A DNA stretch of 64,000 bases, taken from the NCBI RefSeq assembly GCF_000143415.4, contig NW_003314290.1, forward strand, positions 1,328,536-1,392,535. The letters are read 5' to 3'. Below are positions 14,118 through 18,382 of this stretch, one piece after another. The notes beneath the pieces are model-generated. The model had not been told where the DNA came from. It worked only from the letters and a program-made list of their open reading frames with translations, and ran no database searches. Both the position numbers and the translations under genes were made by a program. Position 1 is the first letter of the stretch, and the number at the start of each line of letters is the position of its first letter. This stretch comes from Selaginella moellendorffii. Taxonomy: Eukaryota > Plantae > Lycopodiophyta.

Positions 14118-15362
14118 ATTACCCTACTTTCATAATACATTAATGTAGTGTAACATATAGACTGTTCAATTGGGATTAATCCCTAAACAATAATTCTTAT
14201 ATCCCAAACACTCACATTAGTGGAGTGGAGGGGCACTACAAATTATCACTAAAGAGTAAAGCTTTTTGGCAAAGTGTTTGCAATTGTTCCACTTTGTTTA
14301 TTCCCTCATTCTTCCATTAAATTTAGCTTCTCCATTGTCTAGATCATTATTGCTTTTGGAACTAACTTGATATCATAAATATTCTAAGAATCTCAAATGG
14401 TATAAGGCCAAAAGTCATTTGCATAGGTCATCTTTCAATCTTACTACATCTAGAATGGCATTAAATGTAACACACATGAATTTGGAGCCAAAATCTAAAC
14501 TTATTATGTTACAAAATAAGTTTAGTACACTTTCAATCTTATGAGCATCAACTCCATATCCAGCATCTACATGCAAAATGGTGTCAGACATGGTTTAGCA
14601 CAATTTTGGCATATTAATAGCCTAAAACAAGGAGATGGGTACCCTATTAACTAACAGAGCATGGAATTTGGGATTAGACCTATGTTAAATATAGAATAGA
14701 GAGCAATATAACTTAGAAAAAGCTAAACTAATAATGTCTCAAATGTTCAACTATGTAATTTAACCATTATCCCCACTATACATTTGAAACCCTTTATAAC
14801 CCCTACCCACCCATCTCAGTGATGTTTTAAATGAGTTTTTCCAACTAAATATTATCAACAAGGAAAGTTAAAACTGGGCTAACTATTGTTTGACTAACTA
14901 AGAATTTTTTTTTTTTATTAATAGAATCCTTGATCAGTTTCGGTTTTGAGCATTCCTATATTCCACAATTTTCCAAAGTTTTAAGTTGAATGTATTTTCC
15001 TCAATATGAATAGTATTAAAAAAATTATTTTACTGTTGTTACTAAAAAAATTATATATTTTTTTGAGAGTGGAGTTTTCCATTGATTTCTTTGTCTTCTT
15101 TATCTCCTTAAGGCATTTTATAACAAGATGTCAGGTCTAATCCTTAATTAAGATATCTATTTAAATATCCCAACCACTCACAATGTTTACTTTATAAATA
15201 TTTTCTAAATGTGAAAGTTTATTTAAAATTGTTTTCTAGTAAATTCAAGACCGGATTAAAAGCTTTAAGTTACAACAGCTAATTTGTAAAGTTAAATATG
15301 GATATACTAACTTCAAAAACTAGAATATTCACATTTGATGCCAGCACTAGGGTTTCTTTTGG

Positions 15363-16286
15363 ATGTGGGGGAGTGGCAAGGCGATGCTCCAGGGCTGGTT
15401 CAATGGTGGCCCCAGCGGCGATGGAGCTGCCGGCGATGGAGCTCCTAGCCTTCTATCGCAGTGGAATTCCTACGCGGAGGTATCGCGCCAGGAGGCCGGG
15501 GGTCTGGATGTGGAAGCCGGCGCGCTCTTCAAATCCGCCAACGACACAATCTCCGGCGCATTCAGCACGTAAGATCTCGTTTCCTCTCCAGATCCTGGTT
15601 TCTAGAGCCCGATCCGTGCTATGCTCGCACACAATTCTGTGTTTAGTTTCATGTTTTCTTTGTCAGGTTGTCTAAGGGCGTGAGAGAGCTTCCTGGAAGC
15701 GTACAATCGGCGACGAGCGGGATTCCTTCTGGAAAGGCGATCACATACTTTGCTCTGCTGCTGGGATCCGGGGTCTTCTTCCTCTTCATCTCCTTCACTA
15801 TGTTCTTGCCGGTGATCGTTCTCGTGCCTCAAAAGTTTGCGTCGTGCTTCACGATCGGATGTCTGCTCGTCATGGGATCTTTCTTCGCGCTGAAAGGTCC
15901 TCGCGCGCAGTTTGCTCACATGATCTCGCAGGAGGTGAGAAGTTCTTAGATTTGTTCCATGGATTGGTGGTCTCACGCTTTCGTTCTTTCTTTCTTTTTT
16001 GGATTTGTAGAGGTTGCCTTTCACTGCGGCCTTCGTTGGAAGCATTGTGGCGACGATCTACGCGTCGATGGTGTTGCACAGCTACTTGTTCTCAGTTCTT
16101 TTCTCTGTAGTTCAGGTAAGCTCGAGCTACTTCGAAAAAATCAAGTTTGCTTCTTTTCTTTTTGCGTGTTTGCAGCTTCTGGCATTGCTCTACTATGTCA
16201 TATCCTACTTCCCAGGTGGCTCCTCGGGCCTCACCTTTATATCCTCCATGGCCAAATCGTCTGCCTCAAGAGTTTTTGGTGGCTAA
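15363..16286 (+). CDS. Got1/SFT2-like vesicle transport protein (4 exons)
   Basis: Exons about 15363-15568, 15667-15934, 16011-16116 and 16176-16286. Motifs FLPVIVLVPQKFA..FTIG, GP..Q..HM, RLPFT and YYVISYFPGG. The start could be 15384. Confidence 0.92.
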
Positions 16287-16511
16287 AAAGTTTGTAAGTT
16301 TTCGTGCTTTCAATGTAGACATTCATTGTTGTAGTTCTTGCCACTTGAAGAAATCGATTGGTGATACTTGGAAGATGAGTAAGCTTCTAGCAAAAAAATG
16401 TTGGAAGACTTGGGAAGAATGTATGGATTCATATTAAGAGAGACAATGACAATGACAATGAAACTAACAATGAGACAATGACAATGAAATACTTAATACA
16501 TAGCTTAAGGC

Positions 16512-17759
16512 TTACGCTTCGTCTCCTTCCTCGTTCATGGCCGCAAAGTCCAGTGGATAGCGAAGAATCCCTCCAATCCCTCCATATCCCGAGCAAAAGC
16601 TAGACCCTTCCTCCGTGTGATTCGTGATTATGTGCAGCTCGCACCCAAATCCTTTGTACTCCTCCGCAAGCCACTCCACCAGAGCCTTCTCTTCCACCTC
16701 CCTGTTCCTTGGAACCTCTTCCTTCGCTTCCTCCTTGCTCAAAACCTTGGTCACCTTGTTCCCGGTCTGGGGATCGTCGTAGACATACCTCCTCGTTTCC
16801 AAATCCTCGTAAACAATCAAGCTCTTCACCGCTCCCATTTCCAACGCCTGGAGCGTGTCCCTGATCCCCGATACGTGCTTGTTGGAGCAGACTCCGACCT
16901 CCTCGAAGAACTCCCCCAGCAGCTTCTTCTCCTGGACGAACTTCACGCTGGCTAGAACATCCTCCGAGAGCTCGATCGCCTGATTAAACCCCCGTTCTCC
17001 TCCATGGGATATAGTCACCACCTTGAGAACTTTGGCCCTCAGCCGGGGATCCAGCAAGGGCTCCAGCTCCGTCTTGAGATCGGCGCTCCCCGCGAGGATC
17101 AATCCCGCAACGTTGGCCTGGCTGCTGCTGGGATCGATGAAGTGCTTCACGGCAGCTTCGGATGCCTGGACGAGATAGTTGTGGCGGCACCCGGTTCTTA
17201 GTCTATCGAATCGCAAGGCCGACTGCCCTCCCCGGCCGTGCTTCTTCGGCAAGTCCACGCTGGACTTGTCGAGGATTAACCGTCAAGCCCCACTGAGCGT
17301 CCCAAACAAGGTCCCGTTACCGTCCATGACGATGAATCCATACTTGGTCTCGGACTCCTCGAGCAGGAAGTCCAAAAGCTCCGTGTGGAACCTCTTGTCG
17401 CAGAGATACGCAAACCGGCTCAAGGGCTTGGCGGGCTCAAAGCTCACGGCAATCATCCTGTCCTTGTTGCCCCCTAGAGCAATCGTCCCCACGAAGATCG
17501 CCAGGCCCCTGGGCGGCACCTTGGAGTAGAGCTTCAGCCGCTGCTGGGCCGATTTGATGGCGCCCTGGACCGACTGGCGATTGGTCCGGCTCTTGATGTT
17601 CGCCGCCGCCCCCATCTCCTCCACCAGGAGCTTCTGGACCCTAGCCACTTGATCTCGCGGCGGCACCATGAGCGTGATCATGCTCGTCCCGTTACCTTGC
17701 ATCTCGCTCAGATCGCCGAGAAGCCTGCGCGTGCGCCATAGCTCCACGCCGACCTCCAT
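16512..17759 (-). CDS. eRF1-like peptide chain release factor interrupted by one in-frame TGA (readthrough candidate or pseudogene)
   Basis: ORFs 17283-17759 and 16512-17258 are in the same frame, joined by TGA plus 8 sense codons ([31 protein letters not shown]). Motifs GNGTSM, NIKS, YLCDKRF, GGQ and GYGGIGGILRY are present; the terminal stop is TAA; no introns. Confidence 0.9.
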
Positions 17760-17809
17760 CGCTTCTTTCTCGCCCTAAAATCTCCTCAAGCCCTACGCGC
17801 AGGGCACGA

Positions 17810-17816
17810 TTATATA
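17810..17816 (-). promoter_or_regulatory. Candidate TATA box of the eRF1-like gene
   Basis: TATATAA on the minus strand about 50 nt upstream of the ATG. Confidence 0.5.
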
Positions 17817-18382
17817 CCCCCAGCTTTTCAATCCTGCCCGTCCGATATAACTCAAATTTAACCTCGGAGATCCACGGCTGGCGTTTGAAAAGAATTTACC
17901 GACGCGAGAATCTTCCTTTTTTACACTAGGGTTCTTCCTGTTTGCATGGTTTTGTTGAACGAGGGCCGCTCAAGCGTGGGCGGAGCCTTCCAAGTGAAAT
18001 CTATGGTCGCTTCTTCCTTTTCCTCGCACATTTAGCGTGTCTAGTGTGTGCGCTCTACCTCGTTCAACGCTCTTTCTCTCACCTACCATTCTTCCACAAA
18101 GGCTGCCGCGCGTGCGCTCTACATTTGAGAGATTTCTCCTCGCCTTGGGGACGAGATTTTGGATTCGCGGTTCGCAGATCTGGGAGGAATCGCTCGGCAA
18201 GTTCAGGTAGCTTTTCTTTGAGGAATTCGCCCAAATTTGTTTTTTTTTTCTTCGGTCTGTGTTCTTCGAATTTTTTTCTGGGCTTTCGGCCTGTGCATGC
18301 TTTGCTCGATTAATGTGGGTGTGTTTCGCGTGATCCAAGTTCTTACAAACTTGTGGTGCTTGTCTCCAAATTCTAGAGAGCT

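Follow-up and report, generated by a model that had tools for sequence, protein, structure and literature searches.

A divergent, transcribed eRF1 paralog of Selaginella moellendorffii carries an in-frame UGA-CGG and may depend on stop-codon readthrough

A 64,000-nt stretch of the Selaginella moellendorffii genome (assembly GCF_000143415.4, NW_003314290.1, positions 1,328,536-1,392,535, forward strand), here called the window, was found to carry on its minus strand a divergent gene for the translation release factor eRF1 that is interrupted by a stop codon. From 17759 to 16512 the sequence translates as a single 416-codon frame whose sole internal stop is a TGA at 17285-17283, codon 159; the codon directly 3' of it is CGG, and the frame ends with TAA at 16514-16512, where the next base is G. 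The first-pass annotation of this DNA had described two eRF1 open reading frames as one colinear frame broken by this TGA and closed by a different stop, and retranslation agreed with it on both counts. The parts of the gene are listed below.

17810..17816, minus strand: TATA-like box TATATAA, from the sequence, about 25-50 nt upstream of the ends of the RNA contigs
16173..17787, minus strand: transcribed, unspliced span covering the whole gene, from RNA contigs of runs X2, X10 and X15, which carry no strand
17286..17759, minus strand: codons 1-158, eRF1 N domain and first part of the M domain (Pfam eRF1_1, E 2e-18; structure 8ip8, E 5e-58)
17690-17682, minus strand: GTS sequence motif
17600-17589, minus strand: NIKS sequence motif
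17408-17388, minus strand: YxCxxxF sequence motif (YLCDKRF)
17260..17343, minus strand: 84-nt GT..AG "intron" of the public gene models, judged an annotation artefact on composition and RNA contigs
17283..17285, minus strand: internal UGA, codon 159, present in both genome scaffolds (L001 and L002), a DNA contig (X12) and an RNA contig (X10)
17280..17282, minus strand: CGG after the stop, giving the type II UGA-CGG readthrough context (motif class of PMC3159437 and PMC3542737)
16515..17282, minus strand: codons 160-415, rest of the M domain and C domain, translated only past the stop (Pfam eRF1_2/eRF1_3; 8ip8, E 1.5e-86)
17250..17268, minus strand: local hairpin of 8 bp with a 3-nt loop, predicted by folding and weakly supported
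17231-17223, minus strand: GGQ motif, within codons 174-184
16571-16557, minus strand: GILRY sequence motif (GGIGGILRY), near the C terminus
16512..16514, minus strand: terminal stop UAA, followed by G

The 158-aa piece upstream of the stop matches Pfam eRF1_1 (PF03463) and the 256-aa piece downstream matches eRF1_2 and eRF1_3 (PF03464 and PF03465), all three above the curated cut-offs. Both pieces are also colinear with solved eRF1 chains (8ip8 and 1dt9), the best match being the wheat chain 8ip8 at the E-values listed, and the three-domain architecture of eRF1 is thus present. An uninterrupted reading frame is not, as the TGA stands at codon 159 in every sequence examined. In the alignment the UGA sits at the near-invariant Thr of canonical ...SGNTREV..., a column that holds Thr in 86 of 90 canonical green-lineage eRF1s, so that the first-pass placement of the stop at a canonical T is borne out. 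This position is inside the region of M-domain homology, the eRF1_2 match of the downstream piece starting at profile position 24, and GGQ and the C-terminal region with GILRY lie 3' of the stop, again as first described.

All motifs associated with decoding and catalysis (GTS, NIKS, YxCxxxF, GGQ and GILRY) are intact in this expressed paralog. The equivalents of E55 and S70 are kept (EEMG and RQSV), while TASNIKS has become AAANIKS. Among columns invariant in canonical eRF1s, 98 of 112 are kept downstream of the stop versus 58 of 82 upstream; the N side, with 24 of its 82 otherwise invariant columns changed, is the most remodelled part of the protein. In Euplotes eRF1, change of S70 to Ala gives a specificity for UAR (R, purine) only (PMC3632111), and the residue tied to that specificity is retained here. 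Judged from sequence, the remodelled N domain could mean a changed stop-codon or context preference, and the role of so strongly altered a decoding domain is a question that the gene raises.

Among database proteins, SELMODRAFT_416122 and SELMODRAFT_440399 of the same species come closest; they are encoded on scaffolds GL377594.1 (L001, coding sequence identical to that of the window) and GL377575.1 (L002) of GCA_000143415.2. Since both scaffolds have the same neighbours at this place, a His_Phos_1 gene and a Got1 gene, L001 and L002 represent two haplotypes of one locus. TGA CGG is present in both. An independent DNA run (X12, record 10) gave a contig over 16805-17329 that has the TGA and matches the window except at 16888 and 16983, and a contig of RNA run X10 (record 3) over 16984-17787, with a lone difference at 17181, has it too. 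The combinations of variants in L001, L002, X10 and X12 form four haplotype patterns, with the stop in four of four; among the haplotypes checked, neither an allele without the TGA nor a second lesion was seen. A sequencing or assembly error, against which the first-pass annotation had cautioned, is ruled out, as two scaffolds, the RNA run X10 and the independent DNA run X12 all carry the TGA. The stop is real, occurs in all checkable haplotypes and is carried in RNA.

Contigs of runs X2, X10 and X15 show GT..AG joints in neighbouring genes, which identifies them as RNA. These three runs, from three studies, cover the eRF1 paralog unspliced, with no joint within 16173-17787, so that transcription of the locus, which the first-pass reading needed, is established. 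Their contigs end at 17787 (X10), 17778 (X15) and 17763 (X2), 4-28 nt upstream of the ATG, and the TATA-like box first reported upstream of the gene was found at 17816-17810. Word depth in X10 was 501-790 over contigs containing the eRF1 gene only versus 294-462 over its neighbours. X2 and X15 carry a few unlisted differences, and X10 is the RNA run in which the TGA was individually verified. An exact look-up of the 158-aa product on the contigs returned no record. A scan for bacterial-type promoters and terminators, not relevant to a plant gene, found nothing.

Canonical eRF1 of S. moellendorffii is encoded at a separate locus (SELMODRAFT_442186 and SELMODRAFT_442941) as a 437-aa protein 89% identical to Marchantia eRF1, which makes the gene in the window a paralog, as the first-pass annotation had called it. 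The canonical coding sequence is intronless and ends UAG-GAA, which is not the CARYYA readthrough context of seed-plant eRF1-1. Its protein has NIKN, not NIKS, a variant shared by 23 of the 122 full-length green-lineage eRF1s aligned. The two haplotypes of the canonical gene (L003 and L004, 2501-3814 in each) show 2 coding differences and a proportion of synonymous differences (pS) of 0.0034, about 10-fold below that of the paralog locus (0.038).

The paralog is 58.5% identical to the canonical eRF1 of its own species, where canonical plant eRF1s average 85% among themselves, and all gaps in the alignment with the canonical protein span whole codons; the heavy divergence without further lesions that was noted at first pass is thus confirmed. 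Its terminal branch, 2.77 substitutions per site where the median is 0.05, is about 50 times longer. A search for orthologs with the C and N pieces gave best matches outside S. moellendorffii of 58% and 64% identity within the sequence collection used. A clade of the paralog with the Selaginella canonical gene was not rejected (p-AU 0.21), whereas FastTree placed the paralog as sister to a divergent wheat sequence, probably through long-branch attraction, the branch being too long for a firm placement. Rare residues common to the paralog and the Selaginella canonical protein numbered 3 of 12, a level that other divergent sequences also reach. Sequences from Triticum turgidum (P0056), Camelina sativa (P0106) and Cardamine amara (P0059) have 54-63 rare residue states each, 11-13 of them common to the paralog; these may be other divergent flowering-plant eRF1 copies or poor gene models, and the overlap in rare residues probably drives the spurious wheat placement in FastTree.

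Selection on the frame was estimated by NG86 from the comparison of L001 with L002, which differ at 13 coding sites, 9 of them downstream of the stop. Over the whole coding sequence there are 11 synonymous and 2 non-synonymous differences (V288I and E357D, both conservative), giving an omega (dN/dS) of 0.054 with pS 0.038 and a proportion of non-synonymous differences (pN) of 0.0021. Upstream of the stop the counts are 4 synonymous and 0 non-synonymous (omega 0), and downstream 7 and 2 (omega 0.084), a value well off 1 and in line with the first-pass proposal. The probability of two or fewer non-synonymous changes among the nine downstream is 0.0017-0.0069 (binomial, with 50-85% transitions assumed). 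When neutral rates are taken from the divergence of the 5' intergenic sequence (1.47%) or from pS, 8.7-22.8 non-synonymous differences are expected downstream against the 2 observed (Poisson, P 8e-3 to 4e-8), and 8 of the 9 downstream differences occupy third codon positions (P 1e-3). Codons 160-308, which include GGQ, hold 1 non-synonymous difference where 5.0-13.1 are expected, and as the first in-frame AUG past the stop is codon 309 they are unreachable from downstream AUGs. The haplotypes have no indel in the 1248 nt of coding sequence, while the flanks have indels and 1.1-1.7% divergence; a further synonymous change (V349) comes from the third haplotype, X12. The coding frame is under purifying selection on both sides of the stop, and downstream constraint of this sort is what a readthrough-dependent gene predicts. 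The NG86 value between the paralog and the canonical gene, 0.375, is not interpretable, as pS reaches 0.53 at a GC content of third positions of 0.77-0.92 and dS is saturated.

Synonymous divergence between the haplotypes of the paralog (3.8%) is higher than that of the adjacent intergenic sequence (1.5%; Fisher P 0.03). GC-rich third positions or a long-standing balanced polymorphism may account for the excess.

The frame is continuous across the stop, so frameshifting is not needed to pass it. UGA-CGG is the type II readthrough motif of the tobra-, peclu-, furo- and pomoviruses of plants and also of alpha- and coltiviruses (PMC3159437, PMC3542737). UGA-C is the weakest stop tetranucleotide (PMC4748822, PMC3521657), and no other single feature determines leakiness as strongly as C at position +4 (PMC4748822, PMC5397192, PMC3521657). 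Of the leaky context claimed in the first-pass annotation, the UGA-CGG core matches the type II motif, and the flanking A at -1 and G at +9 of that motif are absent. Downstream of the stop, folding predicts a hairpin at 17268-17250 of -15.0 kcal/mol; the corresponding position of the canonical gene reaches -6.0. A 40-nt window gives the hairpin a z-score of -2.3, but in 60- and 115-nt windows the score is not significant (-1.1 and -0.1), and 16 of 403 windows of the coding sequence are as stable (top 4%); as a readthrough stimulator this predicted structure is a lead only.

Taken together, these data make it reasonably probable, although far from assured, that the gene is a lineage-specific eRF1 paralog that is transcribed and selectively maintained and whose full-length product requires readthrough of the UGA. 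Several points weigh against this reading. The search returned no ortholog, the stop being conserved among haplotypes of one species, and a branch as long as 2.77 against 0.05 is also expected under relaxed constraint. The selection test is a small sample of 13 differences between two haplotypes, the third haplotype has a radical change, C291F, downstream of the stop, and with recombination some of the differences may predate the TGA and reflect selection on a once-intact gene, since sites at least 91-102 nt from the stop may differ from it in genealogy. The strand of the RNA contigs over the paralog is not readable, as the contigs are strandless and those of the eRF1 gene merge with the 3' end of the convergent Got1 gene. 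Readthrough as the bypass mechanism is inferred. The viral consensus xxA-stop-CGx-xxx-xxG is matched in part only, with U at -1 and C at +9, and the weakly supported hairpin begins 14 nt past the stop in place of the viral ~8 nt. Last, with about 1 kb following the first stop, the transcript is expected to be a target of nonsense-mediated decay (NMD) in plants (rule from PMC5397192).

The main rival, which we consider unlikely but by no means negligible, is a recently disabled gene: a functional divergent paralog in which a nonsense mutation drifted to fixation, giving a young unitary pseudogene, with the signal of selection being pre-lesion variation carried along by recombination. Loss of GGQ and of the eRF3-binding domain through the stop would fit it, as would the extreme branch length, the lack of a known ortholog, the small selection sample and the radical C291F. 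If linkage is assumed to decay over a few hundred bases, the haplotype differences nearest to the stop, 91 nt before and 102 nt after it, need not share its genealogy. The same differences speak against a new nonsense allele having swept recently. By population-genetic reasoning, and not by computation, a recent sweep would remove the diversity of the locus, whereas a mutation fixed neutrally should, on average, predate most pairwise coalescences. A fast sweep would thus have erased the 3.8% synonymous diversity seen here, and under neutral fixation the differences should be mostly neutral, yet 11 of 13 are synonymous and indels are absent. The locus also continues to give an abundant transcript, and no haplotype examined has a second lesion. 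When the canonical coding sequence was allowed to drift neutrally to 58.5% identity, it acquired a mean of 6.9 stops, with one stop or fewer in 0.7% of runs; the real paralog has one. The neutral pattern and accumulating lesions of a pseudogene were not found, the gene having an omega of 0.054, one lesion, no indels between haplotypes and a transcript. Its lack of introns is not diagnostic either, as the canonical coding sequence is also intronless.

It is rather improbable that the 158-aa N-terminal fragment is the functional product, acting as a stop-codon-binding decoy or modulator, with the rest dispensable or made separately, for example from the AUG at codon 309. The fragment is a complete reading frame with its own AUG, it keeps all decoding motifs, and its four haplotype differences are all synonymous. 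However, the stop lies within M-domain homology and not at the end of the N domain or at any domain boundary, which fits poorly with a designed stand-alone N-domain protein. Codons 160-308, out of reach of a downstream AUG, nevertheless retain GGQ, are free of indels and show 1 non-synonymous difference where 5-13 would be expected, and invariant residues are better kept downstream than upstream.

Removal of the stop by splicing is how the public models deal with this gene. SELMODRAFT_416122 and SELMODRAFT_440399 are 387-aa proteins in which an 84-nt "intron" at 17343-17260 (3417-3500 of L001 and L002) skips the stop, and the public model P0001 accordingly lacks 28 residues around it. The segment has GT and AG ends, an in-frame length and a size within the local intron range of 55-170 nt. 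On the other hand, the contigs of three RNA runs pass straight through it and none contains a joint at 17343-17260, although contigs can miss a rare isoform. Its composition is exon-like (GC 0.54 and T 0.26, compared with GC 0.33-0.45 and T 0.34-0.49 in nine RNA-verified local introns), and the protein stretch that it encodes is among the best conserved in the family: of its first 20 codons, which precede the stop, 17 match the canonical residue, a share far in excess of the gene average, which points to constraint at the protein level. The annotated intron was rejected as the main form on these grounds, and we regard splicing around the stop as most improbable. The models thus hide the stop behind an invented intron, and the case is invisible in protein databases, where it appears as an intact but internally deleted eRF1.

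Decoding of the UGA by a dedicated route (selenocysteine, a suppressor transfer RNA or RNA editing), listed since UGA is the selenocysteine codon, found no support and can be set aside almost entirely: no selenocysteine insertion sequence (SECIS) or other Rfam match at E up to 5 was found in 15800-18200 and no transfer RNA gene in the 64-kb window, the RNA contig of X10 shows the TGA unchanged, and neither selenocysteine machinery nor ADAR-type editing is known from land plants.

The Got1-family gene next to the paralog is convergent with it (plus strand, coding sequence ~15363-16286), the 3' ends of the two lying within ~225 nt (16173-16512). Because RNA contigs join both genes, their 3' untranslated regions probably overlap as a natural antisense pair. 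Beside Got1, at 14500-14870 of the window, the word depth in X12 rises to ~20,000 from ~250 elsewhere, with many diverged pieces, which marks a high-copy repeat.

If full-length eRF1 is indeed produced by readthrough, most ribosomes would stop at codon 159 and yield the 158-aa fragment as the main product, and a minority would insert a near-cognate residue at the UGA, by analogy Trp, Cys or Arg. Readthrough would complete a 415-aa eRF1-like protein with the decoding N domain, the GGQ-bearing release domain and the eRF3-binding C domain. As it would compete with eRF1 action at the stop, full-length output would be predicted to rise as termination activity falls, and a negative feedback like that of prfB or the mimiviruses would result, provided that the product is an active release factor. 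By this analogy the gene might be a prfB-like termination sensor, that is, a specialised eRF1 paralog gated by its own UGA-CGG and made only when UGA termination fails, a proposal that we put forward tentatively and hold to be doubtful at present. Such a gene would offer a compact, naturally occurring reporter of how efficiently a plant terminates at UGA.

In the literature, which is incompletely searchable, no report was found of this Selaginella gene, nor of any release-factor gene of a cellular eukaryote in which an internal stop is maintained. The only autoregulation of eRF1 described in eukaryotic cells combines a terminal stop and NMD in seed plants (PMC5397192), and bacterial prfB is a known release-factor gene that senses termination by recoding, one of this sort having been proposed for giant viruses as well (PMC3521657). 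The type II viral signals have the identical UGA-CGG and work in plant cells (PMC3159437, PMC3542737). They differ in conserving A at -1 and G at +9 and in having an extended stem-loop after a spacer of ~8 nt, whereas the Selaginella site has U at -1, C at +9 and a compact, weakly supported 8-bp hairpin after 14 nt.

In the seed-plant eRF1-1 circuit (Nyiko et al. 2017) a leaky terminal UGA-CAAUCA is followed by an intron in the 3' untranslated region that triggers NMD; the frequency of readthrough depends on the level of eRF1, and the functional protein arises from normal termination (PMC5397192). Both are plant eRF1 genes with a stop that has C at +4 and is leaky, in the Selaginella case by prediction. 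In the Selaginella paralog, however, this stop is internal and the terminal stop is UAA-G, and the RNA contigs contain no splice joint in the 3' untranslated region, from 16512 down to 16173, so that the organisation is not that of the eRF1-1 readthrough-NMD circuit.

Bacterial prfB (RF2) undergoes a programmed +1 frameshift at an internal UGA at codon 26, with a Shine-Dalgarno sequence as stimulator. Like prfB, the paralog is a release-factor gene with an in-frame stop of the kind that its own product family recognises, and its output should rise when termination is weak. The event differs, a frameshift at codon 26 in prfB, whereas the Selaginella frame is continuous and would require readthrough, with the stop at codon 159 of 415.

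The closest known case is the class-I release factor of Mimivirus and Megavirus (R726/mg280; Jeudy et al. 2012), for which readthrough was shown in Escherichia coli and autoregulation was proposed (PMC3521657). In common with the Selaginella gene, its eRF1/aRF1-type reading frame is split by an internal UGA-C, which the virus must read through, and ends in UAA, a strong stop; in the virus bypass competes with termination (PMC3521657). The viral gene also needs a frameshift, and its readthrough was demonstrated by experiment; the Selaginella gene is nuclear, has a single in-frame stop and coexists with a normal eRF1 in the same land plant, and its readthrough is inferred. Were an internal stop indeed maintained by selection here, recoding-based release-factor sensing would be within the reach of cellular eukaryotes as well. 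If the interpretation is true, the paralog would be the first release-factor gene of a cellular eukaryote to rely on recoding for its expression, and would add a third, convergent solution to those of bacteria and giant viruses.

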